From sequence record NC_023719.1: a stretch of 64,000 nt of DNA; one strand, 5' to 3'. A program made the translations under genes and the position numbers. This document shows, piece after piece, positions 15,884 to 43,239 of the stretch. Numbering within the stretch: position 1 is the first letter of the stretch; each line of letters opens with the position of its first letter. A model generated the notes under the pieces. That model was not told the origin of the DNA, ran no database searches, and was given only the letters and a program-made list of their open reading frames with translations.

Positions 15884-15901
15884 AGTAAAAATCTACTTTA
15901 C

Positions 15902-15964
15902 ATAATTAATATTTATCCTTCTATGTGAAAATCAACATACCATAGAAGGGTTTATGTTAATTAT
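15902..15964 (+). repeat. Conserved intergenic long hairpin, copy 1
   Basis: ATAATTAATAT-tt-ATCCTTCTATG...CATAGAAGGGT-tt-ATGTTAATTAT. Confidence 0.8.
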
Positions 15965-16001
15965 CCGTTACATATTGCTTTCAAAATAAGGAGGATTTTA
16001 G

Positions 16002-19000
16002 ATGGTAAAATACTATTATGATAAATACGCATCAATTAGTACTACCAAGTATGTAGAACCCGCGTGGATTAATATGAACGCAACTGGCTCAACCGTAGCT
16101 TTTACTCTCAAACCTAAGAGTTACTCGTTTAATTCAACTACAGGAAAGTTCAGTTTGTCTACTGATACATGGGGCCAAGCTGAAGAAACAATTCAAGTTG
16201 GACAAACTTGTTATGGATATGCTAGTGGAGAACTTTATGAATATACAGCTATACAATCAGCATCTTCAGGATCTGTGCCAATTTCTCTTTATAAAAAAAG
16301 AGAAATAGATACTACTACCCAAACAACATATTCAAAAGGTGCTTTATTACAGTCTAATATTGTTGCAGAAGATGGAACTTACCCTGTCAATGGACGTCAC
16401 ACTGATGGCTATTGGTATGTAAGAGGTTCTATTGCTAATACTGCGCCAACAGTTCCAGGTGTATTTGTATATCCTGAGGGGTCATTGGAAGTAGGTGATT
16501 CTAAAGTTGTTTCGTGGGGAGCATCTACAGATATAGATGGAAATTTGTCTAAATATATCTTAGAAGTATCTATTGATAGTGGTACTTGGACTCAAATAGG
16601 AACTCCAACTACAAATACCTTTAATTATACTATCCCAACAGCTGTTAATATTAAATTTAGAGTTAAAGCTCAAGATAATGATGGTTTAGAATCTGGATAT
16701 AGAGAAAGTTCTGTATTTACAGTACAAACACTAAATTCTAATATGGTAATTGATAAACCTTATTTAGTAGATGGTAATGGTGGTAGGAAATTAGTACTAT
16801 TAGAAAACGAAGCATTAGTTTTAGGACTTAGAGACTCCACCAACAATAGAGTTTATTGTTACAAATCAGTTGATAAAGGTTTAACTTGGTCAAAAATATT
16901 TGATAGAGGCATAGTTTCTAAAGATATTTCTTTAACTACTCAAGGGAATTTTATTCATTTATTGATAGCTGAATCAACAACAGTGTCTTATTATAAGTTG
17001 AACGAACTAGGGGAAGTTATTTCTTCTAATCTTTCAATTGATACGGGACAAATTGCAATTAGCAATATATCTTTAATAATCAATCCAGCAAATGGTTACT
17101 TGCATGCAGTATGGGCAAGTAAAGATTCAACGTATTCGAATTCATATAATCTCCGATATGCAAATAGTACTGACGGTGGGAGTACATGGTCGAGTGTAGA
17201 GCAAATAACTAAAATTAATAATACAACATATCATTTTGAATCCCCATCTATTGCAATTCATCAAAATGAACCTCTAATTGTATGTCAAACAAAAGGGTTT
17301 TATTTGAATGGTTCTGTAGTAGGTAGCGGCAATTCTTATGGTATCTTGCTATTGAGTAAAAATGCATCCTTAACTACAGATACTTCTAGTAATATTAATC
17401 TCCCATGGAAACACAAACTCATATATGGTGTTGATTCGTACGTACAGTCTAATCCTTCTGTAGTAACAAGTAAGGAAGGCGTCATTCACGTAACGTGGAC
17501 AGGTGCAGATAGTGCTTTTCCGTCAATACAAAATCTTAGATATAATTGGTCAACTGATGGCGGAGTAACTTGGAAATCACAAGTTACAAATAAAATAACA
17601 AATGAAACTACTAAAAATCAACTTTATCCATCAATAACTATTGATAAAACTGAAACCGCGCGTATAGTATGGCAAAGCGAAAACGGCGTTAATCAATATA
17701 CATTAAGACAGCTAAAAATGCTAAATGGTCAAGGAGAGTTAGATAAACCAGCTAATATTAAAACTGTAATAGGAGTATCGCCAGCTACGCTTTACGATCC
17801 TTCTTTGTTGGGTAAATTTGGAGATGTACCGTTTACAGTCTTTAATAAAACGTCTAATGATTCAAAATTATTAAGTGTTGACTGTATTGGTGAATATACG
17901 ATAAATAAAGCTCCAACAAAACCCGGCGCTTTTACTCAACCTACTGAAACTATTTTAGAGATAGGAGATTCTAAAATAATTTCATGGGGAGCGTCTACAG
18001 ATGAAAATGGAAATCTCTCTAATTATGTTTTAGAAGCTTCTATTAATAATGGCGCTTGGATACAAATGGGAGCCCCAACTACAAATACACTTACCCTTAC
18101 TATACCGAGTGTTCCTTCTGGCGCCAGCGCTAAGTTTAGAGTTAAGGCTGTTGATACTGAAGGCTTGACATCAGAATATACAGAAAGTTCTGTATTTACA
18201 GTAGTAGTGCCAACTTATTATTGGAGCAAATATTCTGTTATAGAAGAAAGACCATTAATTATGAGCATGTATAGTTATACTCCTTGGGATAATGAAACTA
18301 CTTTAGCAATTTCAAATTATGAAGGCAGGTTGTACTCTAGTTATATCGTTGAAGACAAGAAATTTAAACTTGTATCACTTGTGTCTTCAATTGCTTCGCT
18401 AACTGTAGGTACATTTGTATATTTAGATGCAGGTAATGATAGAATATCTAGTTTATATGTTGCTTATAATGATGGATTTAATATAGCTTTTAGCGATACT
18501 GTCTATGAATTGGTAGAAGGAGATTTGGTCTATAAAAAAGGTGATTTATTACAATCTGATATTGTAGGCGTATATAATGCATACACTAATAATGCTAGAA
18601 ATTCAGATGGTTTTTGGTATGTTAGGGGCGCAAGTACAAAAATCACTACCCCTGGCGCTTTTACCCAACCTACTGGGACTTTAGAAATAGGTGATTCTAA
18701 AATTATATCTTGGGGAGTAAGTAGTGGTGTTTTTTCCAAATATATTTTAGAAGTATCAATTAATAACGGGAATTGGACTAAAATAGCTGAACCAACATCA
18801 AATAGTTACACTTATGTTATACCTACAAGTGTCAGTCTTAAATTCAGGGTTAAAGCTGTTGGAGCTACTAACATAGAATCAGAGTATGTAGAAAGTAGTA
18901 TATTTACAGCTCAACCGCCACAGTACTATTATGATAAGTTTGCTTCAATAAGTAATACTCAATATGTTGATAACGCTCCATGGGAATATCTGGGACCAGG

Positions 19001-20624
19001 GCGAGCTTGGTATTCAGCTACGTACACGTCTTATGGAATTGATTCAAATGGTAAATATTACAATAGTGGTACACTATGGGGAGGGCCTGTGAGTTCAGGT
19101 TCTATGTCATATATTACTGGTGGAGCCGGTAATAATTCCACAGTAACGCGATATACCGCATTAGAATCTACGCCTAATCCAGTAATGGAAATAGCAATCG
19201 ACGTCCATATAAAACGAGCAAGTAATATTACACAAACAACGACATGGTCAAAAGGTTCTTTGATGCAAACCGGAATAATTGGAAGTGCTACATCATATCC
19301 AACTAATGGAAGACACACTGATGGTTATTGGTATGTGCGTGGTTTACGAGTTAGTCAATCAATTGCTCCTCCAGGAATATTTAATATAGCATCAGATAAA
19401 GGTAAATTTTTACCAAATGAAGTTGTAAATATATCATTTGATTCTTCTTCAGCTTCAAATATTTCAATTTATGAAGTAGATTATAGATATAATGAAAACT
19501 CTTGGATTCCATTAGATTACAATAACACTTTAGCGAGAACACTAACTACAACGACTGATAAATCACTTAAAACCTTACAATTCAGAGTAAGGGTTAAAGA
19601 TAAAAATAATGTATACTCGGATTATGTTTATTCTGACATTTTCAAAATAGATCATAATACTGCGCCAGTTATTACCATAACTAGCCCAACTAATGATATA
19701 ACTTTATACGAAAATGATTTTTTAAATGTTGTTGGAACAATTAACGATATTGACCAGGATCAAAACTTAATCATATATTGTCAAGTTAATAATCAAGAAA
19801 AGCACATAATATTTGAAAAACAAAGTTCAACTCAAGCACAATTTGCGAAACAATTAAAATTTACAAATGGGAAATTGCATAATGAAGATATAGAGATATC
19901 AGACGCTTTAAGCGAAGATTTATTGCATAGTATAAAAATATGGGTAGAAGATAGTGAAGGTGGAAAATCTAACATTGAAACACGCTCGTTTTATGTGGAA
20001 CTTAATCACATACCTTTAATTTCTATAAATGAAATCATTCCAAACGGAATTATTGATAGTGACAAATTTATTATTTCTGGAACAACCTCTGATCAAGATG
20101 AGGATTCTATTATTAAAGTGACTTATAAAATTAATAATGGAATTATTACAGAGATTTATAGTGGTGCTGGCGGAAATTGGCAATTTGAAGTTTCATTAGT
20201 CCAATTGAAGGTTGGAGAAAATAGAATCACTGTTGAAGCGACCGATAACTATAACGCTAAATCTGTTAAAATTATTAAACTTAATAAAAATGAAATCAAT
20301 AAACCTATTTTAGAATCTATTGCTAGATATAAAATAGAACCTCCAAAAGAAGTAGTAAAAGGAGTATTGTTATTCATCCAAAGAGATGAACAACTTGATA
20401 TAAAAGTAGAAATCTCCATGAATATGTTGAATGAACAAGAAAACTTTATTGAATTAAATCCCGAAAACTCTGCCCCTATGCCAAATAAAATTGGTATAAT
20501 AGAGGATACTTTCCATCATGAGGTTCTAGAAAACAAAGAAAACATTATTTTAAAAATAACAGCACTAAGACAAAATGTAGATGATAATTACAAAATTCAT
20601 TTAATTTCAGGTGTAGTTGAGTAA
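16002..20624 (+). CDS. Mosaic tail-appendage/fibre protein A (Fn3 + BNR/Asp-box propeller + Ig-like + conserved C-terminus), 1540 aa
   Basis: Fn3-like FRVKAxD modules; Asp-boxes SVDKGLTW, STDGGSTW, STDGGVTW; 3x GxWYVRG cassettes; C-terminus ...LISGVVE. Confidence 0.75.
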   Translation: MVKYYYDKYASISTTKYVEPAWINMNATGSTVAFTLKPKSYSFNSTTGKFSLSTDTWGQAEETIQVGQTCYGYASGELYEYTAIQSASSGSVPISLYKKREIDTTTQTTYSKGALLQSNIVAEDGTYPVNGRHTDGYWYVRGSIANTAPTVPGVFVYPEGSLEVGDSKVVSWGASTDIDGNLSKYILEVSIDSGTWTQIGTPTTNTFNYTIPTAVNIKFRVKAQDNDGLESGYRESSVFTVQTLNSNMVIDKPYLVDGNGGRKLVLLENEALVLGLRDSTNNRVYCYKSVDKGLTWSKIFDRGIVSKDISLTTQGNFIHLLIAESTTVSYYKLNELGEVISSNLSIDTGQIAISNISLIINPANGYLHAVWASKDSTYSNSYNLRYANSTDGGSTWSSVEQITKINNTTYHFESPSIAIHQNEPLIVCQTKGFYLNGSVVGSGNSYGILLLSKNASLTTDTSSNINLPWKHKLIYGVDSYVQSNPSVVTSKEGVIHVTWTGADSAFPSIQNLRYNWSTDGGVTWKSQVTNKITNETTKNQLYPSITIDKTETARIVWQSENGVNQYTLRQLKMLNGQGELDKPANIKTVIGVSPATLYDPSLLGKFGDVPFTVFNKTSNDSKLLSVDCIGEYTINKAPTKPGAFTQPTETILEIGDSKIISWGASTDENGNLSNYVLEASINNGAWIQMGAPTTNTLTLTIPSVPSGASAKFRVKAVDTEGLTSEYTESSVFTVVVPTYYWSKYSVIEERPLIMSMYSYTPWDNETTLAISNYEGRLYSSYIVEDKKFKLVSLVSSIASLTVGTFVYLDAGNDRISSLYVAYNDGFNIAFSDTVYELVEGDLVYKKGDLLQSDIVGVYNAYTNNARNSDGFWYVRGASTKITTPGAFTQPTGTLEIGDSKIISWGVSSGVFSKYILEVSINNGNWTKIAEPTSNSYTYVIPTSVSLKFRVKAVGATNIESEYVESSIFTAQPPQYYYDKFASISNTQYVDNAPWEYLGPGRAWYSATYTSYGIDSNGKYYNSGTLWGGPVSSGSMSYITGGAGNNSTVTRYTALESTPNPVMEIAIDVHIKRASNITQTTTWSKGSLMQTGIIGSATSYPTNGRHTDGYWYVRGLRVSQSIAPPGIFNIASDKGKFLPNEVVNISFDSSSASNISIYEVDYRYNENSWIPLDYNNTLARTLTTTTDKSLKTLQFRVRVKDKNNVYSDYVYSDIFKIDHNTAPVITITSPTNDITLYENDFLNVVGTINDIDQDQNLIIYCQVNNQEKHIIFEKQSSTQAQFAKQLKFTNGKLHNEDIEISDALSEDLLHSIKIWVEDSEGGKSNIETRSFYVELNHIPLISINEIIPNGIIDSDKFIISGTTSDQDEDSIIKVTYKINNGIITEIYSGAGGNWQFEVSLVQLKVGENRITVEATDNYNAKSVKIIKLNKNEINKPILESIARYKIEPPKEVVKGVLLFIQRDEQLDIKVEISMNMLNEQENFIELNPENSAPMPNKIGIIEDTFHHEVLENKENIILKITALRQNVDDNYKIHLISGVVE

Positions 20625-20638
20625 ATAAATCTAGTTAA

Positions 20639-20701
20639 ATAATTAATATTTACCCTTCTATGTGAAAACTAAAGTAGTATAGAAGGGTTTATGTTGATTA
20701 T
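20639..20701 (+). repeat. Conserved intergenic long hairpin, copy 2
   Basis: ATAATTAATAT-tt-ACCCTTCTATG...TATAGAAGGGT-tt-ATGTTGATTAT. Confidence 0.8.
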
Positions 20702-20748
20702 TACGTTACATATAGATTTTTACTAAATAATTGTAAGGAGGTTTCAAA

Positions 20749-23700
20749 ATGGTAAATTTTTATTACAACAAATATAATACAATTGAAAAATATGATATAG
20801 TCCAGTCATATTCTTTGAGATCAAGAACTTTTGAAGAAGGCGGTAGTTCTATAAGAAATGGGATAAGAATAATGCTTGAAGCTATTTCTTCAGGCGAATA
20901 TTTTGAAACTATGTATAGACAACTTACCGAATCGTCACCCGGCAATTATGTGCCTAATGATTCAGTTACTATTAGGGATGATGGTACTGATGATAGATAC
21001 TATGAAGCTCCACCTATGGAATTTGTGAGTGGTAAACTGTACTACATGAAAACGAACAAAAGATATTTAGGTTTCGTTTTAACAAAAGGTTCTGCAACCG
21101 GTCTTGAAACTTATCATTATTGGACAGGCGAAATTTTCACATTGCAAAGGGGTAATTACACTTATTCACAAGGTACTTTAGTGAGTAGCAATATCATTGC
21201 GGAAGATGGAGTTCTACCAGCTAATGGACGTCATACAGATGGATTTTGGTATGTTAAAGGAACTCAAGTCTCTTCATTACCATCTGGCACTATAATTGTT
21301 TCGGATAAATTTACAACACAAAATCCTTCATCTAGAAAATTAGTTCGCTTAGGAAATGGATGGTTACTATCTTTAATGGTACGACAAAACTCCAGCATGA
21401 ATATAATGGTGTCTAGAGACAAGGGTAATACTTGGACCTTTAGTGGATCAGTAAGTAACAACACTATAAAGGATGCAGCAGTTACAGCGGTTGGTAATGA
21501 TGCGGTTATCGCACTTCAAAATGACGGCGAAATCCAAGTATGGAAATGGTCTAGTACTACTAGCTCAAATTCTTATGTAGGTGTTATAGTGAATGGAGTA
21601 CAATTATCTAGTGATGGAATATCTATTTTTTATGATAATATAGAAAAAGTATTATTTGCAACATGGGCTAGAAAAAATGGTAGTAGTTACGCTATTTACT
21701 ATGCTAAATCATTTGATAATGGTGCCACTTGGCCAAGAAATAATATAGTGTTTTCAATAGATGTAGCTGGATATGATTATACTTGCCCATCAATTGTAGC
21801 CCATGGTAGCAATGCTTATATAATAGCTCGTTATGTTAGAGGTACAAATAATTCAATTGTTTACGCAAAGAGCGTTAATAAGGGTGATAGCTTCATAACC
21901 GCAGAAACACTCTATGATGCTGGAATCTATCTTGCGACATCGCCAATAGCAGTTGTTGATAAAAGCGGGAGAGTACATGTAACTTGGAATGGACATGAAT
22001 CAACTAATGCTTCAATTCATGTGATGTCTCGTTATTTAGATGATTCAACTAATAGTTGGATAGAGCCTACTACTAAAATACCACAAAGTAATAACTTAAG
22101 TAAATCAACATTGACGGTTGATCAAAATGGAAACGTTTATGTTATTGGAGAAAATTATGGAAATATAATTAGTTACGTATCAAAAGATAGAGGAATTACT
22201 TGGTCGACTTCATCTACAATTGTTGCAAGCGGTTCAATGTCTCAATCTTTATATGACCCTACTTGGAATATTAATTTTAGTGGAGATCTTAACTCACCAC
22301 CTCCATTTATTTATAGAAAAACAAGTGATACAGTAATTGAATATAAGGGTACATTTACTACTAATGACCCACCTCCAACACCTGGGGTGTTTACTCAACC
22401 TACTGGAAGTTTAGAAATAGGAGATTCTAAAGTAGTTGCATGGGGAACATCATTAGACGCGGTAAAATATATTCTTGATGTTTCAATTAATGGTGGAACT
22501 TGGAATCAAATTGGAACGCCAACAACTAACAGTTTCACATATACTATTCCAACAGCTACAAGTGTTAGATTCCGTGTTAAAGCGCAAGGAAGCAATGGGT
22601 TGGAATCAGGTTACCAAACAAGTAACGTATTCACTGTTACAGAGCCAATGTATTATTGGGGTAAATACAATACAATTAGCACTCCAAGTACTTCTTATAA
22701 TTTAACGTGGAATTTCCAATTTGAAATGAATTGGAGTGATGTTGATTCAAGTCGCGCAATACATGGTTACACAAGTTACACTGTTGGTTCAAACGGTGTA
22801 CCAGCAGAATCAGGTTCTTATGTATTGAAATATTATGATGATATTTCTGGATCTATAACTTTATACTTTGTTAGCGGTGGAAATTTATATAGAGACACTG
22901 CGTCCTCATCTAGTAGAACTCACTCTAGATATATAGCTACAATTAAGGATGTAAGTACTGGATATACTTATTCTAGAGGTTCATTTATTGAAAATGTTGT
23001 AGGTGGCTATAGTGCTTATACAAATAACTCTAGGAACCCTGACGGATATTGGTATGTGAGAGGCAGTAGAACTAATCAATCTATTGTACCAACTGGAGCA
23101 TTTAATATAGCTTCTAATAATGGTAAATTTAGACCAAATGAAGTTGTAAATATATCATTTGGAGCATCAACAGCCTCTAATATTTCATTGTATGAAGTAG
23201 ATTATAAATATAATGAAAACTCTTGGTCTCAGTTAGCTTATAATAATACTTTGGTAAGAACATTAACTACAACAACTGATAAGTCTCTTAAAACCTTACA
23301 ATTTAGAGTAAGAGCGAAAAATACAAGTAATGTATATTCAGATTACATTTACTCTATTGTTTTCAATATAGATCATAATTCTGCACCAGTTTTAACTTTA
23401 AATAATCCAAATAATGGTATAACTTTATATGAGAATGATTTTTTAAATATCAATGGTACGATTAATGATATTGATCAGAACCAAAATTTAAATATATACG
23501 TTCAAATAGATAATTATAAAGAACAAGTGCTAGAGACAATAACAAGTGGAACTCAAATACCATTAACTAAGCAATTGAAATTTAAAAATGGTAAACTATT
23601 TAGTGGTGATTTTGAAGTATCAGATGTTTTAAATGAAGAGTTAGAGCATAGTATAAAAGTTTGGGTAGAAGACGATGAGGGTGGTAAATCCAATGTTGAG

Positions 23701-24345
23701 ACTCGTTCGTTTAATGTCGTACCTAACCATTTGCCTTTAATATCTATAAACGAAATAAATATTGATAGTATTATTGATACCGATAAATTCATTATTACTG
23801 GAATCGTATCAGATCAAGATGAAGAACCCACTATTTCACTAACATACCACATCAATGATGGAAATAAAACCGAGATTTACAACGGTACAGGCGGAACTTG
23901 GAGTTTTGAAGTTTTTCTATCTCAGTTAAATGTAGGAGAAAATGCGATTACTTTAGAAGCTACTGATAACTTTGGAGCTAAACTTATAAAGACTATAAAA
24001 CTTAATAAAAATGAGGTTAATATCCCAATTTTAGAATCAATTGCACGCTACAAATTAGATCCTCCAAAAGGCGTTGCAAAAGGTGTACTATTATTTATTC
24101 AAAGAGATAAAGATTTAGAAACTAAAGTGGAATTGTCTATGACTATGAAGAATGAAAACGAACAGTTTATTGAATTAGTACCAGAAAGTACTTCTCCAGT
24201 AGTAAATAAAGCTGGTATTTTAGAAGATACTTATCATCATGAAGTTATAGAAGAAAAAGATAATATTATTCTGAAAATAACAGCAATAAGACAAAATGAA
24301 AGTACGGATTTTAAAATACGTTTGATTTCGGGAGTAGTAGAATAA
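20749..24345 (+). CDS. Mosaic tail-appendage/fibre protein B, 1198 aa
   Basis: Asp-boxes SRDKGNTW, SFDNGATW, SKDRGITW; Fn3 modules; 2 cassettes; same C-terminus as A. Confidence 0.75.
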   Translation: MVNFYYNKYNTIEKYDIVQSYSLRSRTFEEGGSSIRNGIRIMLEAISSGEYFETMYRQLTESSPGNYVPNDSVTIRDDGTDDRYYEAPPMEFVSGKLYYMKTNKRYLGFVLTKGSATGLETYHYWTGEIFTLQRGNYTYSQGTLVSSNIIAEDGVLPANGRHTDGFWYVKGTQVSSLPSGTIIVSDKFTTQNPSSRKLVRLGNGWLLSLMVRQNSSMNIMVSRDKGNTWTFSGSVSNNTIKDAAVTAVGNDAVIALQNDGEIQVWKWSSTTSSNSYVGVIVNGVQLSSDGISIFYDNIEKVLFATWARKNGSSYAIYYAKSFDNGATWPRNNIVFSIDVAGYDYTCPSIVAHGSNAYIIARYVRGTNNSIVYAKSVNKGDSFITAETLYDAGIYLATSPIAVVDKSGRVHVTWNGHESTNASIHVMSRYLDDSTNSWIEPTTKIPQSNNLSKSTLTVDQNGNVYVIGENYGNIISYVSKDRGITWSTSSTIVASGSMSQSLYDPTWNINFSGDLNSPPPFIYRKTSDTVIEYKGTFTTNDPPPTPGVFTQPTGSLEIGDSKVVAWGTSLDAVKYILDVSINGGTWNQIGTPTTNSFTYTIPTATSVRFRVKAQGSNGLESGYQTSNVFTVTEPMYYWGKYNTISTPSTSYNLTWNFQFEMNWSDVDSSRAIHGYTSYTVGSNGVPAESGSYVLKYYDDISGSITLYFVSGGNLYRDTASSSSRTHSRYIATIKDVSTGYTYSRGSFIENVVGGYSAYTNNSRNPDGYWYVRGSRTNQSIVPTGAFNIASNNGKFRPNEVVNISFGASTASNISLYEVDYKYNENSWSQLAYNNTLVRTLTTTTDKSLKTLQFRVRAKNTSNVYSDYIYSIVFNIDHNSAPVLTLNNPNNGITLYENDFLNINGTINDIDQNQNLNIYVQIDNYKEQVLETITSGTQIPLTKQLKFKNGKLFSGDFEVSDVLNEELEHSIKVWVEDDEGGKSNVETRSFNVVPNHLPLISINEINIDSIIDTDKFIITGIVSDQDEEPTISLTYHINDGNKTEIYNGTGGTWSFEVFLSQLNVGENAITLEATDNFGAKLIKTIKLNKNEVNIPILESIARYKLDPPKGVAKGVLLFIQRDKDLETKVELSMTMKNENEQFIELVPESTSPVVNKAGILEDTYHHEVIEEKDNIILKITAIRQNESTDFKIRLISGVVE

Positions 24346-24394
24346 ATATTAATGGAAGAATTCTCGTAATAACAATGAAAGAAGGAGGATAATA

Positions 24395-27300
24395 ATGGCT
24401 ATTATAAATAAAACAACTCCAGAAAGTAATCAACAGATACAAACAGTGGCATTTAAATTAGATAATTTATCTAAGTTAAATAACGTAACAGTAAATACTG
24501 GTAACGTTGAAGTTGTTAGTGTTGTAGGGGATACTGTTACAGTCAAATGCATAAATGGCGCAAGCGTTAGACAAATACAGACGGGTGGACAATATATCCC
24601 TGCGGATTCTAAGACAGAATCTGGGTATAATAGAGTTATTGGTGATCCAAATGCAGTAACTTTGCCACAATCATATACATTTGAAACGAGTGATGGATAT
24701 AAAGGGACTTTATATTTAATTGGGAATCCTTATTGGATTTACGATGATCAGGGCAACGGCATTGGGCTTGAAGGATGGTATTCTGGAACAGTCTATAGAC
24801 CTGAATCAGATACTCGCACATATGAATATTATTATTCATATGTGCTTACATTCGATTATGTTATAAACTCAGCTCCTACCGCTCCTAAAATAACAGTGCC
24901 CTCTATTCAATTTGAACATGGAGATAAACACTATATTTCTTTTGATTCTACAGATGCTGAAAATGATGTATTAACATATACATTAGAGACTTCTTATAAT
25001 AATGGTTCTTCGTGGAGTCAAATATATAGTGGTACTGCTAAGACGTATCAATACACAGTTCCATCAAATCAAACTCAAGTAAAATTTAGAGTAAAGGCAA
25101 CTGATGGAAAAGTAGTTACTGCATATACTGAGAGTTCTAATAAAACTATACAAGAAGTGATGTATTTTTGGAATAAATTTAACAATTATTATAATCCACC
25201 TACAGCATATAAGGGAGCTTTATTCGCAAAAGATGTTCCTATGGATGAAAGGGCTCCCGGAGACTCACCTCCACCAAATAGGCCAAGTGAAGTAGTGGGG
25301 AACCTTTATTATGAATATTATTGGGAAGAAAGGGCAGATGGTTACTATCTCCATGCAAACCTCTATGAATGGATTACAACTCCCGGCGGTGATATGAAAG
25401 GTTCATTAGCTGAAGCAAATATACAAGCAAGCTTTAATACTTATCAACATGCTCAAAAAAATCCCGATGGTTTTTGGTATGAACGAGGTCAGAGAGTTTT
25501 ATCGGAAGATATAACTCCTCCAATTATTGAATTAACAGAACAGAAAAATTTTGGGCCAACTTCTACAATTACAGTAAAAACATATGATTTATCTAGTATT
25601 ACGAAATTAAAATGGGCAAAAGGACAACAAAGCGCAACATATTTTGCATCAAATGGAACAAATATAACAAATGGAAGTTTTACAGTTTCTGAAAACGGAG
25701 ATTATACTGTTTACGCTGAAGATGAGAAAACCAATAAAGCTATTCAAGTATTTACAGTTAAAATGGTTAATACTGCACCTACAGCACCAACTTTGAATGT
25801 ACCAACTATTCAATTTGAATATGGAGATAAACATCAAGTTACGTTTAGCTCTACAGATGCTGAAAATAACACTATACAATACACATTAGAATCATCTAAT
25901 GATAATGGAAATGAATGGCAAGTTATATATTCTGGACAAACTAAGTCTTTTGAATACACAGTTCCTTCAGATAAAACTCAAGTTAAGTTTAGAGTAAAAG
26001 CAAGTGATGGTATTTTAGAAACTGGATATACTACAAGCGAAAATAAAACAATACGCGAAGTTATGTATTATTGGGCAAAATACAATAATGTTCAAGAAAT
26101 GCAATATACAATAAAATATAATACACCGGAAGTTATAGTAAGTGATTTATCATATCAAGGTCAAAACTATAACACTAGTGGTCATCCTACTTATTCTTAC
26201 GATCCACCTTACGGTTTTATAACTCCAAAAGGTACGGGTACTATTATTGGGGATTACGCTGGTAGATATATTCCAGGTACTGTATATGCTACGCCTAGTG
26301 ATGGTTATTACTATTCTGATTATTTGTATATAAAATCAATATCTTATGATAGTAATTATACAAAACAAACAATTTCAACTCAAATATTACAAAGGGTTCC
26401 AAACGGTTTACAAGATAAAATGGGGGCTTATTTATCAACAGTTACTGGTGGATATAATGCTTATAAAACTGGAGTTAAAAATCAAGATGGATATTGGTAT
26501 GTTCGTGGATTAAGAGTTATTCAATTTATCTCACCGCCTGGGGCATTTACTTCTCCTAGTTTAGGGACAAAATTGAAACCTAATCAATCTATTACTATAG
26601 GCTTTTCAGCTTCGCAAGCTACAAATTTAAGTGTTTATGAAGTTGATTATAAATATAATGCTAATTCTTGGGTTGCGTTACCTAGTAATTTAAACCTTAC
26701 TCGCTCATTAATAACTTCATCAGATAAATCTTTAACATCTATGCAATTTAGGGTTAGAGCAAAAAATACTAGTAACACTTATTCAGATTATATTTATTCA
26801 GAAGTTTATGTGTTGGATCATAATATTTCACCAACAATAACTCTAACTAGTCCTTCTAATGATGTGATGTTATATAAAAACGATATATTGACTATTAGTG
26901 GCGAAGTAAACGACGTTGATCAAGAGCAAAATGTATTAGTTTATTATCAAATAGATGATTATGCACATGAATTTGCAATAGCAGGTGAAAGTTCAACGCA
27001 AATATTATTATCTAAAAAACTACAACTTAAAACAGGCAAATTATATGATGGTGATATAGCAGTAACTGAAGTTTTGAAATCTGATAAAGTTCATAAATTA
27101 AAAGTTTGGGCAATAGATAATGTTGGTGGTATATCGGATATTATAGAACGTACTTTCACAGTGTTTCCTAACCATGATCCTTTGTTAACTTTAAATGAAA
27201 TAATTCCAAGTGGCGTATTAGATAGCGATAAGTTTACTATTTCTGGTTCAGTATCTGATGAAGACGTTGATTCTGTAATTTCAGTTACTTACTGTATAAA

Positions 27301-27790
27301 TAATGGAGACAGTACTGAAATCTATACTGGTGCCGGTGGCAATTGGGAGTTTAATGTTTTTCTATCTCAATTGAAGGTTGGAGAAAATGATATAATAATT
27401 AATGCGACTGATGATTATGGAGCTAAATATACTAAAACAGTTAAGTTAAATAAAGATGAAATTAATGTTCCTGTTTTAGAATCAGTTGCTAGATATAAGA
27501 TAGATCCGCCAAAGGGTACAGCTAAAGGTATTTTATTGTTCATCCAAAGAGATTCTGAATTAGAAACAAAAGTAGAATTATCGATGACTATGAAAAATGA
27601 AGAAGAGCAATTTGTTGAAATACTCGCAGAGAATACAGCCCCGCTTCCAAATAAAAATGGTTTAGTAGAAGATACTTATCACCACGAGGTTATAGAAGAT
27701 AAAGAAAATATTATTCTTAAAATAGCTGCGCTGAGACAAGACGAAAACAGCGATTATAAAATCCACTTAATCTCAGGTGTTGTTGAGTAA
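24395..27790 (+). CDS. Mosaic tail-appendage/fibre protein C (no BNR propeller), 1131 aa
   Basis: Duplicated Fn3-like APTAP...FRVKA module, 2 cassettes, same C-terminus. Confidence 0.75.
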   Translation: MAIINKTTPESNQQIQTVAFKLDNLSKLNNVTVNTGNVEVVSVVGDTVTVKCINGASVRQIQTGGQYIPADSKTESGYNRVIGDPNAVTLPQSYTFETSDGYKGTLYLIGNPYWIYDDQGNGIGLEGWYSGTVYRPESDTRTYEYYYSYVLTFDYVINSAPTAPKITVPSIQFEHGDKHYISFDSTDAENDVLTYTLETSYNNGSSWSQIYSGTAKTYQYTVPSNQTQVKFRVKATDGKVVTAYTESSNKTIQEVMYFWNKFNNYYNPPTAYKGALFAKDVPMDERAPGDSPPPNRPSEVVGNLYYEYYWEERADGYYLHANLYEWITTPGGDMKGSLAEANIQASFNTYQHAQKNPDGFWYERGQRVLSEDITPPIIELTEQKNFGPTSTITVKTYDLSSITKLKWAKGQQSATYFASNGTNITNGSFTVSENGDYTVYAEDEKTNKAIQVFTVKMVNTAPTAPTLNVPTIQFEYGDKHQVTFSSTDAENNTIQYTLESSNDNGNEWQVIYSGQTKSFEYTVPSDKTQVKFRVKASDGILETGYTTSENKTIREVMYYWAKYNNVQEMQYTIKYNTPEVIVSDLSYQGQNYNTSGHPTYSYDPPYGFITPKGTGTIIGDYAGRYIPGTVYATPSDGYYYSDYLYIKSISYDSNYTKQTISTQILQRVPNGLQDKMGAYLSTVTGGYNAYKTGVKNQDGYWYVRGLRVIQFISPPGAFTSPSLGTKLKPNQSITIGFSASQATNLSVYEVDYKYNANSWVALPSNLNLTRSLITSSDKSLTSMQFRVRAKNTSNTYSDYIYSEVYVLDHNISPTITLTSPSNDVMLYKNDILTISGEVNDVDQEQNVLVYYQIDDYAHEFAIAGESSTQILLSKKLQLKTGKLYDGDIAVTEVLKSDKVHKLKVWAIDNVGGISDIIERTFTVFPNHDPLLTLNEIIPSGVLDSDKFTISGSVSDEDVDSVISVTYCINNGDSTEIYTGAGGNWEFNVFLSQLKVGENDIIINATDDYGAKYTKTVKLNKDEINVPVLESVARYKIDPPKGTAKGILLFIQRDSELETKVELSMTMKNEEEQFVEILAENTAPLPNKNGLVEDTYHHEVIEDKENIILKIAALRQDENSDYKIHLISGVVE

Positions 27791-27808
27791 ATAAATTCTA
27801 CTTTAAAT

Positions 27809-27868
27809 AATTAATATTTATCCTTCTACGTGAATTCTAAAATCACGTAGGGGGATTTGATATTAATT
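27809..27868 (+). repeat. Conserved intergenic long hairpin, copy 3
   Basis: AATTAATATT-t-ATCCTTCTACGTGA...TCACGTAGGGGGAT-tt-GATATTAATT. Confidence 0.75.
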
Positions 27869-27954
27869 TATCAGATACATAGATAAAATAAGTAAATTAT
27901 TGAAAAACAACAGGAAGATAACAATAGAGAAAAGAAATAGAGGAGGAAATTTTG

Positions 27955-30900
27955 ATGGTGAAATATTATTATGAAAGGTTCACAGCTAACGCTTCTTACG
28001 CAGAATCTTCTTCTGTTGAAAACTTTGGAATAACTTATATAGCAGCAGCTTATAAGCATGAAAGATATAGTTTTGATACAATCAATAATAAATATAATGT
28101 TGTATCTGGTACTCATATCTCAGTGGGAGATGGATTATATTTACCAACTACAATGTATGCAGTTTCTAGTGATGGTACAACGCTAGATATATATGAACTT
28201 CAAGAACCAGATCCCGCAAGTACAGAAGCAACTGCTAAAGTTTACTGGTCAAGGAAATCTACCTCTAGGTCGGTAGCAACTTATAGTAAAGGTAATCTAG
28301 TTCAAAGCAATATAGTTGCAGAAGATGGTAATTACCCAACTAATGGTCGCCATACTGATGGTTACTGGTATGTTAGAGGCGCTCAAATTATACCAGAAAC
28401 TATTACAACAGAGCTGTTTACAACACTTGGCAATAATAAACGGAAATTAGTTCGCCTCCCTAACGGATGGCTTGTATCAGCTGTTGCTGGAGCTGATAGT
28501 ACAAATAAAAATATATTAGTATCTATATCGAAAGATAATGGTAATACTTGGCAAGAATTATGGAGAAAATCAGCTGAAAACCCAGATGTAGCGTTAGTTG
28601 TTATTGGTAGTGATGTTGGTATATTATACGGATTGAGAGCATCTATTCAATACGAAGTTTATTTTAGAAAATTCAAAAGTGATACTAGTACATTTGATAA
28701 TGATGTTACTATTGTCAATACTGTGCAAACAATATCCCAAAATACGCTAACAGCTTATTACGATAAGGGTTCAAACAATCTACATGTAGCTTGGTCTCAA
28801 TATAATAATGGATATAATCTAGCTTACAGTAAGTCAAACAATAAAGGTCTTAGTTTTTCATCTTATAAAGAGATTGTCAATGTTGGAGATTCTAGATACA
28901 GCGCAACTTATCCTTATATTACATCTGTAAATGGGAATTTGAAAATTTTCTATAAACTTATACAAACTAATCAATATATCATGATGCTTAATAGCGTAGA
29001 TAATGGTGAGACTTTTAGTAATCCGTCTACTGTTCATAGTGGAGGAGTCGCTAATAGTTCTAGATTGAGTTCGCCATCAGCAGTGGTAGATCAAACTAAT
29101 CGTTTGCACTTAGTCTATTCGGATGGGGAAAATGGTGAATTTGGTGAAAATCAAACGCCGCATATAATTCATCTTTACTCTAATAACGGAGGAGCTAATT
29201 GGACTAGAGCTTCTGGTTCAGCTCCGTTAAATTTGTACAATAACCAAGAAGATCCAAGTATAGCTGTGGATAAGCGCGGATATGTTTATATTGCTGGTTC
29301 TACTGACGGCGGTGGGGTTAACGCTAGTGTTAATTTATTTATATCAAAAGATAGAGGGGAAACTTGGGGTAATGTTATCAAAATAAGTGATAAAGCTAAC
29401 TACCCTTCGTTGATGCAAGATGATGATTTCGTTGGAATTCTTGGCGACATCCCACCAATGATTTATGTGTCTAACGATACAACAAGATCAATTAAATTTA
29501 AAGGAACTTATACTGTAGAAGAAGCACCAACTATGCCAGGAACATTTACCCAGCCTACTGGTACTTTAGAAATAGGTGATTCTAAAGTTGTATCTTGGGG
29601 AACATCAAATGATGTAAATGGAAACCTTTCCAAATATATCTTAGAAGTATCTATTAATGGCGGTTCTTGGACGCAAATAGGAACTCCAACTACAAACACT
29701 TTTAATTATACTATACCAACAGCTACTAGTATTAAGTTTCGAGTTAAAGCTCAAGACACTGCTGGTTTAGAGTCTGGATATAGAGAAAGCTCTGTATTTA
29801 CGGTAACAGATCAAATGTACTATTGGAGTAAATATAATTCCGTTAAAAATGAAGAATTAAATAAAAACGATCTTAATTATGGAACTATTGTTGAGTATTC
29901 ACATGAATCTAGTTATTCCGATACTATAAGCAAAGTTATTGGAGCAGTTTGGAACTCTATCATTAAATATAATGAAAACCCGTTTAATCAACCCCCATAT
30001 GAAAAATTTGTATACACTGATTTAAAAATAGTTGATGGACAAATGACATTATTGGGTGAAAGTTTATCTATTAATTCATCATCAACTCTACTTGAGATGG
30101 GGAAATACTATTATTTCAATTCATATAATGGTATTTACGCAATAAAGACTCAATTACCCGAAGCTTCAGCTGTAGTTGATAGAAGTATTCATATATATTC
30201 TTTATCTCCTTCAGGAGTAATTTCTTATACGAAAGGCAGTTTGGTTCAAAGCAATATTCAAAGTATATATAATGCTTATCAAAACGACGCAAGAAACCCT
30301 GATGGATACTGGTACGTGAGGGGTAGTAGAGTTAGCCAAACAATTTCACCTCCAGGAGTATTTAATATACCATTAGAAAATAATCAATTAAAACACAGTC
30401 AACCAGTTACTATAACATTTGGGGCATCGAGTGCTTCTAATTTATCTTTATATGAAGTTGATTATAGATATAATGGTGCCGGCAATTGGTTAGCATTGTC
30501 TTATAATAATACACTAACTAGAAGTTTAACTATAACTAGTGATAAAAGTTTATTAAATATACAATTTAGAGTAAGAGCTAAAGATACTAATAATATTTAT
30601 TCAGATTACGTTTACTCTGACACTATTTTAGTGGATCATAATAATGCACCTACTCAACCAGGGGATTTTGTAAAGCCTACAGGCGTATTAGAAATTGGAG
30701 ATTCTAAAGTATTTATAGCTGGAATGTCAATTGACATAGATGGTAACCTATCTAAATACGTATGGGAAGTATCTCTAAATAACGGAGCATACTCTATAGT
30801 TGGAGAAAGTGAAATTCCAAGCTTCACTTATATAATACCAAGTTCTACGAGTTTAAGAATGAGAGTTAAAGCAGTAGATTCTAAAGGTGCTTCAAGTGGA

Positions 30901-33435
30901 TATAGAGAAAGTGAAGTTTACACAGTAGTAAAAGCTAAATATTTTTGGACAAAATATAATGTAGTTCAAATTTCAAAATATCAACATGATGGTTTTGCAA
31001 CTGATACATCAGTTACCCTTGGCACTGGTGGTACTCATGGCAATGATTTCGCTATTGACGAAAACACAGGCCAGTATTCTTTAGTTGGAGAAACTAAACA
31101 ACCATCAAGATTAAATCCACCTAAAGTTGGAGAATATATTATTTTTGTTATCGATGGTTATTTATATAAAATAACTTCTGTAGGCTCGATTAGTGCTGAC
31201 AGTGGTTCTTGGCCAAATTCTACTTGGCAAAAAGCTAAGATAAAAACTACTACATTTGAAGGAAAAGGTACTCCGATTGAAACAAATATCATCGCAGAAG
31301 AAGGTACGTATCCTGTTGATGGAAAACATACCGATGGCTTTTGGTATGTTAGAGGTGCAAAGGTTACTTCTTTAGTTTCAAGTGTAGTAATTGATGATAA
31401 AAATTACAAAACTGCTCCTAATTATGGTAGGAAATTAATTAGATTAGATAGTGGTACCTTAATAGCTGCCGCTTGGAGTGGTACAAGTACAACTTTTGGA
31501 ACATTTAAAATAAGGAAATCATTAGACAATGGCAATACTTGGATTACATTACGAGGTCTTAGTTTAGGTGCAAATGGTGCTACCGATGTTGCGTTAGCTA
31601 CTGATGGAATTAAAATTTTCATATTATACATTCGAAGCGTTGCGGCATCTAATGTGCATGTGACAATAGATATTATGACTGAATCTGGAGAAATACTAAA
31701 AAATGTATTTCCAATTGACACAGGGCAATATGAAATTAGAGGTATATCAATAGCAGTTGATAGATCAAATGGACACGCGCATGCTATATGGGCAAGTAAG
31801 AATGCAACGTATCCAAATTCTTTTAACCTTCGTTATTCTAAAAGTACTGATGGTGGACAAACTTGGTCTACAGTTGAACAAAAAACAGCCCATAATACTG
31901 TAGGTAGAGAAGTAAGTAATCCATCTGTTGTTGTAAACAATGGAGAACCTATTATTGCTGCTGAATTTGCACATGAAGTCACTGGTAATTACATTATATG
32001 TTTTAAAAGTCAATCAAATAGTCCAGTTTATTCTAGTGCTTCATATATCCAAATTAATCCATCATTAACAGCAGATAAAGATGGCGTGCTTCATGCAGTA
32101 TGGAATGGTAGAAACCCATCGTTTAGTAGAAATAATATTTTTTATTCAAAATCAATGGATAATGGAATTAGTTGGTCAAATGCAATTAACTTGACTAATG
32201 ATTCAAATAACAATATATCAGCAAGCATAACATCAGATAAAACGGGTAAATTATATGTCGCATGGCATAATAATTCCTTAGAAATATTATCAAGTGTTTT
32301 TGATGGTACTACATGGAGTGTTGGTAAGAGAGTAATGAATGGAATAAGTGGTACAAATTTCCCATCTACATTATATGATTCTAAGTTTAATGTAATATTT
32401 GGTGAATTCCCTCCATTAATTTATACAGACTTGAATTCAAATAATATTTCATATGTAGGGTCATACGAAACAAGTGATATTCCAACTATTAAACTTTTAT
32501 CTCCAGAAGATAATCAAGTCCTTTACGAAAATGATACGTTTAAAATAAGTGGTAATGTTAATGATGCAGATAGTGATCAATCAGTTACTGTTTACTATCA
32601 AATTAACAATATCCAAAAAACATTAACTACAGTCGCAAGCGGAAATGAAAATGATTTCTTTAAAGAATTAATATTTAAAGATAAAAAGTTATATGATCAA
32701 AATATTGTTATAGTTGATGATTTAGTTAAAGATACACCGTATTCTTTAAAAGTTTGGTCAGTGGATAGTAGTGGTTTTGTATCTGAAGTCGCTGAACGTT
32801 CATTTAGAGTAATGCCTAACAACGCTCCAATATTAGTAGTAAATGAAATCACACCGAGTGGAATTATAAATAGTGATAAATTCACCATTTCGGGAAATGT
32901 TTCAGATGTTGATGAAAATCCAAACATCACAGTCTCCTATAAGATTAATCAGAATGAAAAAATAGAGGTCTACAATGGTTCTGGAGATGCTTGGGAATTT
33001 GAAGTTTCTTTATCTCAATTAAAATCCGGCGAAAACGATATTTCAATTGAAGCAATTGATAACTATTTTACTAAGACTATTAAGACTGTAAAACTTAATA
33101 AGAATGAAGTTAATGTTCCTATTTTAGAATCAGTTGCGAGATACAAATTAGACCCTCCAAAAGGGTCAGCTAGGGGTATATTGTTGTTCATTCAAAAAGA
33201 TGAACAACTTAATATAGAAGTAGAAATTTCAATGACAGATAATGAGCAAGAAGATTTTGTTTTATTAGTTGCGGATAACACGGTTCCAGTAGCTAACAAG
33301 CAAGGCATAGTGGAATCAACTTATCATTATGAGGTTATAGAAAACAAAAGTAATATTATATTAAAAATATCCGCTACAAAGCAAAATGCAGATAGTAATC
33401 ATAAAATTCACTTAATATCAGGAGTTGTTGAATAA
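27955..33435 (+). CDS. Mosaic tail-appendage/fibre protein D (two BNR propellers), about 1826 aa
   Basis: Two clusters of Asp-boxes (SKDNGNTW, SKDRGETW / SLDNGNTW, STDGGQTW, SMDNGISW); 3 cassettes; same C-terminus. Confidence 0.75.
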   Translation: MVKYYYERFTANASYAESSSVENFGITYIAAAYKHERYSFDTINNKYNVVSGTHISVGDGLYLPTTMYAVSSDGTTLDIYELQEPDPASTEATAKVYWSRKSTSRSVATYSKGNLVQSNIVAEDGNYPTNGRHTDGYWYVRGAQIIPETITTELFTTLGNNKRKLVRLPNGWLVSAVAGADSTNKNILVSISKDNGNTWQELWRKSAENPDVALVVIGSDVGILYGLRASIQYEVYFRKFKSDTSTFDNDVTIVNTVQTISQNTLTAYYDKGSNNLHVAWSQYNNGYNLAYSKSNNKGLSFSSYKEIVNVGDSRYSATYPYITSVNGNLKIFYKLIQTNQYIMMLNSVDNGETFSNPSTVHSGGVANSSRLSSPSAVVDQTNRLHLVYSDGENGEFGENQTPHIIHLYSNNGGANWTRASGSAPLNLYNNQEDPSIAVDKRGYVYIAGSTDGGGVNASVNLFISKDRGETWGNVIKISDKANYPSLMQDDDFVGILGDIPPMIYVSNDTTRSIKFKGTYTVEEAPTMPGTFTQPTGTLEIGDSKVVSWGTSNDVNGNLSKYILEVSINGGSWTQIGTPTTNTFNYTIPTATSIKFRVKAQDTAGLESGYRESSVFTVTDQMYYWSKYNSVKNEELNKNDLNYGTIVEYSHESSYSDTISKVIGAVWNSIIKYNENPFNQPPYEKFVYTDLKIVDGQMTLLGESLSINSSSTLLEMGKYYYFNSYNGIYAIKTQLPEASAVVDRSIHIYSLSPSGVISYTKGSLVQSNIQSIYNAYQNDARNPDGYWYVRGSRVSQTISPPGVFNIPLENNQLKHSQPVTITFGASSASNLSLYEVDYRYNGAGNWLALSYNNTLTRSLTITSDKSLLNIQFRVRAKDTNNIYSDYVYSDTILVDHNNAPTQPGDFVKPTGVLEIGDSKVFIAGMSIDIDGNLSKYVWEVSLNNGAYSIVGESEIPSFTYIIPSSTSLRMRVKAVDSKGASSGYRESEVYTVVKAKYFWTKYNVVQISKYQHDGFATDTSVTLGTGGTHGNDFAIDENTGQYSLVGETKQPSRLNPPKVGEYIIFVIDGYLYKITSVGSISADSGSWPNSTWQKAKIKTTTFEGKGTPIETNIIAEEGTYPVDGKHTDGFWYVRGAKVTSLVSSVVIDDKNYKTAPNYGRKLIRLDSGTLIAAAWSGTSTTFGTFKIRKSLDNGNTWITLRGLSLGANGATDVALATDGIKIFILYIRSVAASNVHVTIDIMTESGEILKNVFPIDTGQYEIRGISIAVDRSNGHAHAIWASKNATYPNSFNLRYSKSTDGGQTWSTVEQKTAHNTVGREVSNPSVVVNNGEPIIAAEFAHEVTGNYIICFKSQSNSPVYSSASYIQINPSLTADKDGVLHAVWNGRNPSFSRNNIFYSKSMDNGISWSNAINLTNDSNNNISASITSDKTGKLYVAWHNNSLEILSSVFDGTTWSVGKRVMNGISGTNFPSTLYDSKFNVIFGEFPPLIYTDLNSNNISYVGSYETSDIPTIKLLSPEDNQVLYENDTFKISGNVNDADSDQSVTVYYQINNIQKTLTTVASGNENDFFKELIFKDKKLYDQNIVIVDDLVKDTPYSLKVWSVDSSGFVSEVAERSFRVMPNNAPILVVNEITPSGIINSDKFTISGNVSDVDENPNITVSYKINQNEKIEVYNGSGDAWEFEVSLSQLKSGENDISIEAIDNYFTKTIKTVKLNKNEVNVPILESVARYKLDPPKGSARGILLFIQKDEQLNIEVEISMTDNEQEDFVLLVADNTVPVANKQGIVESTYHYEVIENKSNIILKISATKQNADSNHKIHLISGVVE

Positions 33436-33971
33436 TGGCTTTAGAATATAGAGAAAGGCAACCCGATGGAACTTTAGGTGGTAAACCAGTCAAAGTAGGT
33501 ACTGGTTTATCGCTTGAAGAAAAAATTGAATCACTCGGTGGAGAGTTAGCTGTAGAGAAAATTGAAGGTATTCAAAATGCAACGACTGTTAATGAACTTG
33601 GCGGTCAATTAGCATTAGAAAAAACAAAAGGCATTGAGAATACTAAAACCATCAATGAACTTGGTGGTGAATTAGCTCTAGAAAAGATAAAAGGTATGGA
33701 GAATGCTCAAACTATCAATGGGCTTGGCGGAGAATTAGCCCTAGAAAAAATTAAGGGTATTCAAAATACTTCACTTATTAATAGTTTGGGTGAAGAATTA
33801 ACTCAAGAGAAAATCAAGGGTATTCAAAACACATCTATTATTAATGGTCTTGGGGAGCAGCTTACTCAAGAAAAGATCAAAAGCATTCAAAAAGATGCTA
33901 TTATTAATGATCTTGTATTGGCTGTAGAGGAGCTGAAAGCAGAAGTTGCAGCCTTAAAAGGAGGTGAATAA
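33435..33971 (+). CDS. Coiled-coil tail-fibre assembly-type (XkdW-like) protein with six 21-aa repeats
   Basis: G[GE][EQ]LxxEKxKGxxNxxxINxL x6 (33537-33914); sits between the fibre genes and xkdX. Confidence 0.6.
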   Translation: MALEYRERQPDGTLGGKPVKVGTGLSLEEKIESLGGELAVEKIEGIQNATTVNELGGQLALEKTKGIENTKTINELGGELALEKIKGMENAQTINGLGGELALEKIKGIQNTSLINSLGEELTQEKIKGIQNTSIINGLGEQLTQEKIKSIQKDAIINDLVLAVEELKAEVAALKGGE

Positions 33972-33973: not shown

Positions 33974-34114
33974 ATGGCATTTTGGAGCATGGCTTATAAA
34001 TACAAATGGGTAACAATTGATCAATTAAAATTAGTAGTTAAAACTGAATCGAATCCTTTTGGTGAAATTACACCTGAAGAGTTCAAAACAATCACAGGAA
34101 AAGATTTCGAATAA
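33974..34114 (+). CDS. xkdX: XkdX-family small phage protein (not in the ORF track), 46 aa
   Basis: MAFWSMAYKYKWVTIDQLKLVVKTESNPFGEITPEEFKTITGKDFE; the ITPEEFKTITG motif is typical of XkdX; GGAGGTGA RBS. Confidence 0.85.
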   Translation: MAFWSMAYKYKWVTIDQLKLVVKTESNPFGEITPEEFKTITGKDFE

Positions 34115-43225: not shown

Positions 43226-43239
43226 GAGAGGTAAATATC

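Follow-up and report, generated by a model that had tools for sequence, protein, structure and literature searches.

Cassette-bearing proteins gp424–gp427 of Bacillus phage G as candidate tail fibres of a module shared with Lysinibacillus-group phages

What kind of proteins are encoded by gp424–gp427, four long neighbouring genes of Bacillus phage G, and how did their hypervariable parts come about? Phage G is the only cultivated phage of ~0.5 Mb and the largest one in culture, and the proteins of its adsorption apparatus are unassigned, which makes these gene products concrete candidates for host recognition. The genes lie in a 64-kb stretch of sequence record NC_023719.1 (the window, to which all nucleotide positions of phage G refer unless stated otherwise), equivalent to positions 310001–374000 of the 497.5-kb genome of this phage of the Bacillus/Lysinibacillus host group; window positions 16002–24345 are 100% identical to 326002–334345 of JN638751.1 (Bacillus phage G). 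In GenBank, gp424–gp427 carry no product name, and PMC12484599 labels them 'gp424 adhesion protein family ... only found in phage G'. Our comparisons suggest that gp423–gp429 represent, in amplified and enlarged form, a four-gene tail-fibre module of temperate Lysinibacillus-group myophages (rough probability 0.6), a module that was most likely taken from, or is shared with, such phages.

Architecture and paralogy of gp424–gp427

A regular expression and a profile recovered ten copies of a cassette of ~140 aa (Cas; lengths 109–169 aa), distributed 3, 2, 2 and 3 over gp424, gp425, gp426 and gp427. In every copy, the first strand (YYYxKY) and the last ~35 aa (...KGxLxQSxI...NGRHxDGYWYVRG) are conserved, and the sequence between them is highly variable. 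Translating the window in all six frames gives ten occurrences of the end motif DG[YF]WY[VE][RK]G, always within gp424–gp427, where composition alone would predict 1.5e-6 occurrences, and the cassette profile has exactly ten matches in the entire phage G genome. The architecture is thus real and far above chance, and the ten cassettes with constant flanks that a preliminary description of the window had reported are borne out in number and distribution. That description had also called the cassette interiors unrelated, which holds in part: no BLAST similarity was found between them (best E 8e-5), but all ten cassettes align to one domain profile, nine of them over its full length and the short one of gp426 from position 6 to 140.

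All four genes lie on the plus strand and differ in how the cassettes are combined with other modules. gp424 (16002–20624, 1540 aa) reads Cas(4–142)-FN3-BNR(246–632)-FN3-Cas(739–876)-FN3-Cas(975–1114)-C1-Ig1-Ig2-CTD, where C1 is an FN3-like module and CTD the C-terminal domain; its cassettes lie at 16011–16427, 18216–18629 and 18924–19343 (profile envelopes, as for the other genes). The layout of gp425 (20749–24345, 1198 aa) is Cas(4–171)-BNR(172–536)-FN3-Cas(635–772)-C1-Ig1-Ig2-CTD, with cassettes at 20758–21261 and 22651–23064. An unassigned N-domain (1–155) opens gp426 (24395–27790, 1131 aa) and is followed by FN3, the short cassette (257–365; 25163–25489), an unassigned stretch of ~90 aa, FN3, a second cassette (558–705; 26066–26509) and C1-Ig1-Ig2-CTD; this protein has no BNR propeller. 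The longest product, gp427 (27955–33435, 1826 aa; start ATG at 27955, with an alternative TTG at 27952), is arranged as Cas(4–142)-BNR(143–519)-FN3-Cas(622–790)-C1-FN3-Cas(996–1134)-BNR(1135–1507)-Ig1-Ig2-CTD, its cassettes being located at 27964–28380, 29818–30324 and 30940–31356. The domain maps agree with the FN3 modules read earlier as interleaved with the cassettes and, together with the profiles, with the propeller count of 1, 1, 0 and 2. Pfam cut-offs were exceeded by gp427 (BNR_2, 75.3 bits, cut-off 31.4; BNR_4, 45.1 bits, cut-off 27.3), with the gp424 and gp425 propellers remaining below them (23.9 and 27.2 bits), and the four propellers share 24–32% pairwise identity. All four proteins match phrog_21129 (1790–2393 bits).

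At the DNA level, the FN3 segments at 16485–16724 (gp424) and 29566–29805 (gp427) are 86% identical over 240 nt, confirming a similarity seen earlier; other long paralogous segments reach 66–76%. This pair is possibly a gene-conversion tract. The regions upstream of gp424, gp425 and gp427 (15870–16027, 20606–20774 and 27775–27881), not that of gp426, also resemble one another (76–78% identity over 107–170 nt) and thereby form a common upstream element, possibly a promoter or leader.

The proteins all end in the same block, Ig1-Ig2-CTD (the C-core, ~320 aa), encoded on the plus strand at 19659–20621 in gp424, 23380–24342 in gp425, 26825–27787 in gp426 and 32476–33432 in gp427. A common C-terminal domain of ~190 aa had been proposed for all four; the shared end stands, but the shared block is ~320 aa long and its last domain, ARYK...LISGVVE, ~113 aa. 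In gp424–gp426, C1 directly precedes the C-core (~425 aa together), and in gp427 it lies elsewhere. C-core identity is 51–66% among gp424–gp427 and 33–53% to homologues in related loci. In a maximum-likelihood tree of C-cores, the four phage G copies form one group (support 100/99) that is nested in a Lysinibacillus clade and branches as gp427, (gp426, (gp424, gp425)). This places the duplication of the C-cores within the phage G lineage, and the four genes are indeed paralogous, as first described.

A probable tail-fibre module shared with smaller phages

For gp425, ~70 homologues of 720–930 aa were found in Lysinibacillus, Viridibacillus and Sporosarcina genomes, with 40–51% identity over the C-terminal 55% of gp425; their usual layout is Cas(4–140)-FN3-Cas(245–380)-C-module. 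Alignment scans located the fibre family in 34 genome loci (Lysinibacillus, Viridibacillus, Sporosarcina, Solibacillus, Psychrobacillus, Gracilibacillus and Bacillus) and in 61 viral contigs, all ≤70 kb. Since gp424-type homologues are present in many Lysinibacillus-group prophages, the statement that the family occurs only in phage G fails; that the four proteins belong to a family of such prophages also independently fits the revision of the phage G host to Lysinibacillus. The C-core ends all 77 unique related fibres and is the only part present in every one, the N-terminal part being variously Cas, Cas-F-Cas (F, FN3), BNR, an ALK/LTK-type glycine-rich domain or Big_9. Every building block of the phage G proteins (Cas, FN3, BNR, C1, Ig1, Ig2 and CTD) was found in small-phage fibres, including a related propeller in 21 of the 77, and from their sequences the phage G proteins look like concatenations of common small-phage fibre layouts.

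The gene order around these homologues points to the tail. In a Lysinibacillus prophage (L006), the fibre gene is preceded by genes for the tail terminator, sheath, tube, tape measure protein, a Dit-like protein, PAAR, sheath initiator, Baseplate_J, wedge, a 102-aa and a 199-aa protein, and is followed by four small open reading frames (ORFs) and an amidase gene. Similarly, ~40-kb IMG/VR contigs (L002–L005) carry the order tape measure protein, hub, Baseplate_J, Tail_P2_I, a 214-aa ORF (in L004), fibre, holin and endolysin. For comparison, phage E217 has its fibre gene immediately after that of the wedge triplex. Judged by gene order, the position of the fibre gene in these relatives is the tail-fibre slot of a contractile-tail phage, and the tail-fibre assignment made earlier is in keeping with this synteny, with baseplate and wedge genes before the fibre and lysis genes after it.

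In the 37 loci with readable flanking ORFs, the fibre (469–844 aa) is one of four genes, standing between that of a partner of ~200 aa and those of a coiled-coil protein of ~71 aa and an XkdX-like protein of ~50 aa. The ~50-aa protein of L006 matches Pfam Phage_XkdX with E 2.7e-4 and 21.4 bits, below the 23.5-bit cut-off. All four components have a counterpart in phage G. Upstream of the fibre genes, gp423 (14501–15883, plus strand, 460 aa) is a candidate fibre adaptor: its C-terminal 139 aa (15461–15880) are homologous to the ~200-aa partner, with 60% identity to that of L006 (9399–9998 of that locus), to which the 214-aa protein of L004 is 63% identical. A homologue search with the N-terminal 320 aa of gp423 gave nothing informative. 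Downstream, gp428 (33435–33971, plus strand, 178 aa), the start of which overlaps the gp427 stop codon, encodes a coiled-coil protein homologous to the ~71-aa prophage protein; it contains about seven copies of a 21-aa unit (LGGELALEKIKGIQNTxxIN-like; DNA repeats at 33533–33915), compared with about two in the prophage homologues. PMC12484599 reports one SNP in gp428, conserved across laboratory lineages. The last gene of the module, gp429 (33974–34114, plus strand, 46 aa), encodes an XkdX-like protein whose sequence was aligned visually with that of the second ORF after the fibre gene in prophage modules, and a bidirectional, terminator-like hairpin of the intrinsic type (34120–34142) closes the module.

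Tandem fibre genes also occur outside phage G: a 57-kb IMG/VR contig (L078) carries two of the family at 8333–10963 and 11045–13540, both with propellers, so tandem duplication is not unique to phage G. A fibre on a contig labelled Micromonospora provocatoris (L024) nests among Lysinibacillus sequences, and this contig is probably a contaminated or mislabelled assembly. Scans of IMG/VR revealed no jumbo relative, and a scan of JGI metagenomes returned only prophage-type relatives (43–47% identity), with no long contig from a relative of phage G.

Further genes adjoin the module in the window. gp420 (6783–12815, 2010 aa) and two smaller ORFs (12816–13931 and 13957–14298), which have no Pfam or PHROG match, immediately precede gp423 in the same orientation and may belong to the same structural operon. 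On the other side, gp431 (34634–37675, 1013 aa) shows weak matches to PHROG 'tail protein' entries and, below threshold, one to an ILEI domain, and may be another surface or adhesin protein. Further downstream (42560–61001) follows a long tandem array of paralogous ORFs of ~200 aa.

Cassettes as exchanged units

Among 49 prophage homologues with two cassettes, median pairwise identity was 32% for the first cassette (A), 71% for FN3, 27% for the second cassette (B) and 71% for the C-module. Individual pairs exemplify the exchange of a single cassette. Homologues P0012 and P0038 are 100% identical in A, 92% in FN3 and 97% in the C-module, with only 24% in B, and their low-identity tract (236–373) nearly coincides with the cassette (244–377). 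Compared with P0013, P0012 differs in the other cassette (A 36%, FN3 90%, B 99%, C-module 95%), and the low-identity tract at 3–120 falls on the cassette that extends from 4 to ~140. A third pair, P0031 and P0036, repeats the first pattern (A 96%, FN3 78%, B 26%, C-module 94%). We mapped these breakpoints on proteins because only one DNA-level mosaic pair was available among the fetched loci. Cassette content is thus not fixed across relatives, and the protein alignments indicate that cassettes are exchanged as units at the scale of the phage population, with breakpoints at the constant flanks. Several phage G cassettes find their best match among prophage cassettes, as exemplified by residues 739–876 of gp424, which are 48% identical to cassette B of homologue P0011. 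These matches cross positions: cassette 1 of gp424 matches a B-position cassette and cassette 2 of gp425 an A-position one. With both termini conserved, the cassette behaves as a plug-in unit.

Close relatives of phage G exist in nature, as public metagenomes contain DNA near-identical to the region 16002–21900: a soil run (X1) at ~97% identity, bovine gut (X2) at 99% or more on short contigs, a further metagenome (X3) and sediment (X4) at 100% on 151-nt pieces. In X1, contigs match gp424 and the start of gp425 at 95.5–99.3% identity, run into dissimilar sequence at 18932 and resume their match at 19326, with a depth of zero in between, which corresponds to the interior of gp424 cassette 3 (18924–19343). 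In the same run, cassette 1 of gp425 is 91% identical, compared with 98% for its flanks. This is good evidence that cassette 3 of gp424 has been replaced in the soil relative, but it is not conclusive because the X1 contigs are short and of low depth.

To what fold the cassette belongs was addressed by structure prediction of a single cassette, as had been suggested in the preliminary description. AlphaFold2, applied to residues 972–1118 of gp424 (cassette 3) with a 43-sequence alignment (A2), gave a confident all-beta model of ten strands, the first and penultimate of which are long (mean predicted local distance difference test score (pLDDT) 95.6). A Foldseek search of the PDB with this model yielded a best E of 0.4, and an exhaustive VIA structure search a best Z of 3.3, where unmatched models usually reach Z 7–8. 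In BFVD, the model matched only models of the four phage G proteins and one 'tail protein (fragment)' from an uncultured siphovirus. The domain is not represented in Pfam, PDB searches by sequence and by profile (gp425, gp427 and alignments A2, A3 and A4) returned no significant match, an ESM Atlas search gave no usable lead, and the cassette motif strings were not found in the literature searched. As a missing structural match does not prove a new fold, the modelled cassette is a candidate new adhesin fold only.

Its distribution extends well beyond phages. A profile search of 1.84 billion representative proteins detected 696 cassette clusters at E ≤ 1e-3 (201 at E ≤ 1e-10), with lengths of 140–2700 aa. 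Among the 142 best new matches, the cassette starts at residue 6 or earlier in 83, and the phage C-core is present in 46. Three giant proteins (P0115, P0087 and P0081) open with two or three cassettes that have Ig modules between them, continue with runs of FN3 and finish with three C-terminal SLH domains; by their domain content they are bacterial surface proteins anchored in the wall, with the cassettes at the opposite end. A domain with natural swap points that is so widespread, and that has neither a Pfam family nor a PDB neighbour, is of interest for retargeting the fibres of Bacillota phages and tailocins.

Constant flanks around hypervariable cores, together with the single 86% FN3 tract shared by gp424 and gp427, superficially resemble a programmed diversity generator (a diversity-generating retroelement, an invertase shufflon or cassette conversion) that would switch host range at high frequency. 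We consider such a system extremely improbable here. The gp424–gp427 region contains no inverted repeats except one 30-nt palindrome, and in a DNA repeat comparison no cassette interior had a template-like copy. Differences between the cassettes are in length (109–169 aa) and indels, not in substitutions at A sites. The target of a diversity-generating retroelement was rejected in view of the missing DNA repeat over cassette interiors and of a reverse transcriptase that PMC12484599 lists as absent from phage G. Invertible tail-fibre segments of the Gin/Cin/Min or shufflon type were rejected as well: all genes lie on one strand, inverted repeats are lacking, and the variation lies in internal or 5′ parts rather than in 3′ ones. 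Furthermore, the same source describes five laboratory lineages as 99.9% identical, and its available text mentions no rearrangement of gp424–gp427 (PMC12484599). Diversification is evolutionary mosaicism, not a programmed switch.

Attachment, role and comparison with known systems

How would such fibres be attached? The fibre gene of the four-gene module was duplicated to four copies in the phage G lineage, each combining the constant Ig1-Ig2-CTD with its own N-terminal string of two or three cassettes, FN3 spacers and BNR propellers. In the mechanism that we favour, the C-core would be the virion-proximal end and dock on the conserved C-domain of the adaptor gp423, and the cassettes and propellers would form the distal end that binds the host surface. 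If C-terminal docking holds, phage G could display up to four different adhesive fibres, and their polarity would be unusual. We think it probable that the constant C-core docks on a gp423-type adaptor. Across 35 loci, the pairwise identity of the partner C-domain correlated with that of the fibre C-core (Spearman's ρ = 0.88), compared with ρ = 0.34 for the N-terminal 130 aa of the fibre, despite these being encoded 0–3 nt downstream of the partner gene, and ρ = 0.32 for the partner's own N-part. In the 18 pairs with a partner C-domain identity of at least 85%, the median was 88% for the C-core and 30% for the N-terminal part. Co-variation of the downstream proteins with the C-core was weak (ρ = 0.38–0.40). 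In most fibres the cassette begins as early as residue 4, so that an attachment domain would not fit in front of it, and the C-terminal anchoring of the cellular cassette proteins by SLH domains was taken as favouring C-terminal attachment. Anchoring by the C-terminus, opposite to what is usual for tail fibres, had already been proposed for these genes; the support it receives from the constant C-core, the co-variation with the partner and the SLH-anchored proteins with N-terminal cassettes is indirect.

Several points weigh against this picture. The co-variation was calculated from non-independent pairs and shows co-inheritance, not contact. In phage G, the module lies ~200 kb from the baseplate genes gp188–189 (coordinates from Table 3 of PMC12484599), whereas prophage modules abut baseplate genes; its neighbours are ORFs without known function, not wedge or lysis genes, and the wedge and 102-aa proteins of L006 had no match in the phage G genome. 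The text on the 2025 particle proteomics names detected tail-associated proteins without gp424–gp427, although terL and the decoration protein were missed too (PMC12484599). The CTD, finally, was modelled (pLDDT 88) as a carbohydrate-binding module (CBM)/jelly-roll-like beta-sandwich of a common type, with the phi812 tripod protein as the best structural match (Z 9.2, rmsd 5.5, 109 residues aligned) and CBMs, collagen-binding domains, PirA and XepA at Z 6–7. Glycan binding is the presumed role of the sandwich domains of this tripod. As a common sandwich of this kind, the modelled CTD could itself be the glycan-binding tip, as in conventional fibres, with chaperone-like genes downstream.

This last point leads to a fibre of conventional polarity, which we regard as unlikely: attachment to the baseplate or adaptor would be at, or close to, the N-terminus, the CTD would be the tip for a conserved cell-wall glycan of the Lysinibacillus group, the 71-aa and XkdX-like proteins would be tip chaperones, and the cassettes would be proximal or lateral accessory binders. 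Besides the likeness of the CTD to putative glycan-binding phi812 tripod domains and CBMs, it is the N-terminal end of the fibre that touches the wedge triplex in E217 and P2-type phages, and small genes downstream of a fibre gene often encode chaperones of the C-terminal tip. However, the N-terminus is the most variable and most exchanged part, with unrelated domains there in many homologues, and it is the C-core with which the partner C-domain co-varies; the downstream proteins, as candidate tip chaperones, follow the C-core only weakly.

The module's distance from the baseplate genes could also mean that gp424–gp427 decorate the virion, as Hoc-like head fibres or as part of a coiled structure around the sheath, held by their C-terminal part. 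T4 Hoc is attached by its C-terminal domain, the phage G FN3 modules match PHROG 10993 ('Hoc-like head decoration'), and phage G has a coiled outer structure of helical fibres around its tail sheath, the proteins of which are unassigned; that gp424–gp427 form this coiled structure is speculation. The match to phrog_10993 covers only generic FN3/Ig modules, ~100-aa FN3 stretches at profile positions ~240–365 of 556, and every related small phage examined has the gene in the tail-fibre slot, after the wedge genes and beside the lysis genes. We therefore rejected Hoc-like head decoration, and a decorating role in general seems quite improbable. Very unlikely is a role outside the virion, in which the proteins would serve as adhesins, either released or on the cell surface, or as enzymes with the host envelope as their target in the course of infection or lysis. 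The cassette domain is indeed present in SLH surface proteins of cells, BNR propellers are a typical feature of glycosidases, and the tail-associated proteins named as detected in the 2025 proteomics text do not include gp424–gp427. Against this stand the lack of an evident signal peptide, as the proteins begin directly with the cassette strand, and the strict synteny with baseplate genes and the adaptor/XkdX-like module in ~100 phage loci.

Joining the favoured tail-fibre module with the cassette's wider family, one may ask whether the cassette is an unannotated beta-fold adhesin plug-in common to phage fibres and SLH proteins, whether the fibres form a reversed-polarity class mounted on gp423-family adaptors, and whether phage G shows four of them at once, perhaps as the coiled structure of its tail. 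We hold this combined reading to be possible rather than probable.

The nearest known systems are the PBSX-like and other Bacillota myovirus modules (XkdW/XkdX; P2 gpJ-gpI-gpH order). These resemble the fibre module in its position after Baseplate_J and Tail_P2_I/wedge and before holin and endolysin, in a small XkdX-like ORF downstream and in the beads-on-a-string Ig/FN3 fibre. Unlike them, the present module has a separate partner of ~200 aa before the fibre, with the conserved part of the fibre being C-terminal and the variable part N-terminal; its XkdX match is below the cut-off (21.4 versus 23.5 bits), and there is no sequence match to a solved fibre. Phages with multiple receptor-binding proteins (RBPs), such as CBA120 with TSP1–4, phi92 and phiKp24 with its branched fibres, carry tandem RBPs that have different C-terminal enzymatic parts and dock through N-terminal adaptors. 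They share with phage G the tandem arrangement of several different RBPs, which presumably widens or secures host recognition, but the four phage G proteins share a C-terminal core and differ N-terminally.

In lactococcal and T-even phages, RBP domains are swapped at conserved linkers, as in head-domain exchange and the gp37/gp38 mosaics. There, as here, whole binding domains are exchanged by recombination between related phages; what differs is that the unit in gp424–gp427 and their relatives is a cassette, internal or N-terminal, that is conserved at its two flanks, present in up to three copies per protein and moving between positions. The SLH-anchored surface proteins of Bacillota (P0115, P0087 and P0081) have the same plan of N-terminal cassette arrays with Ig/FN3 spacers and a C-terminal anchor, but they are cellular and bound to a wall polymer, whereas the phage fibres end in Ig-Ig-CTD. 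T4 Hoc likewise consists of Ig-like modules in a row and is held through its C-terminal domain, and the phage G FN3 modules match the Hoc-like PHROG; in this case, homology is limited to generic Ig/FN3 modules, and the context here is the tail, not the head. Taken together, gp424–gp427 probably belong to a known kind of modular, recombining RBPs, with two less ordinary features: a widespread unannotated cassette without a structural neighbour, and a polarity that is probably reversed.

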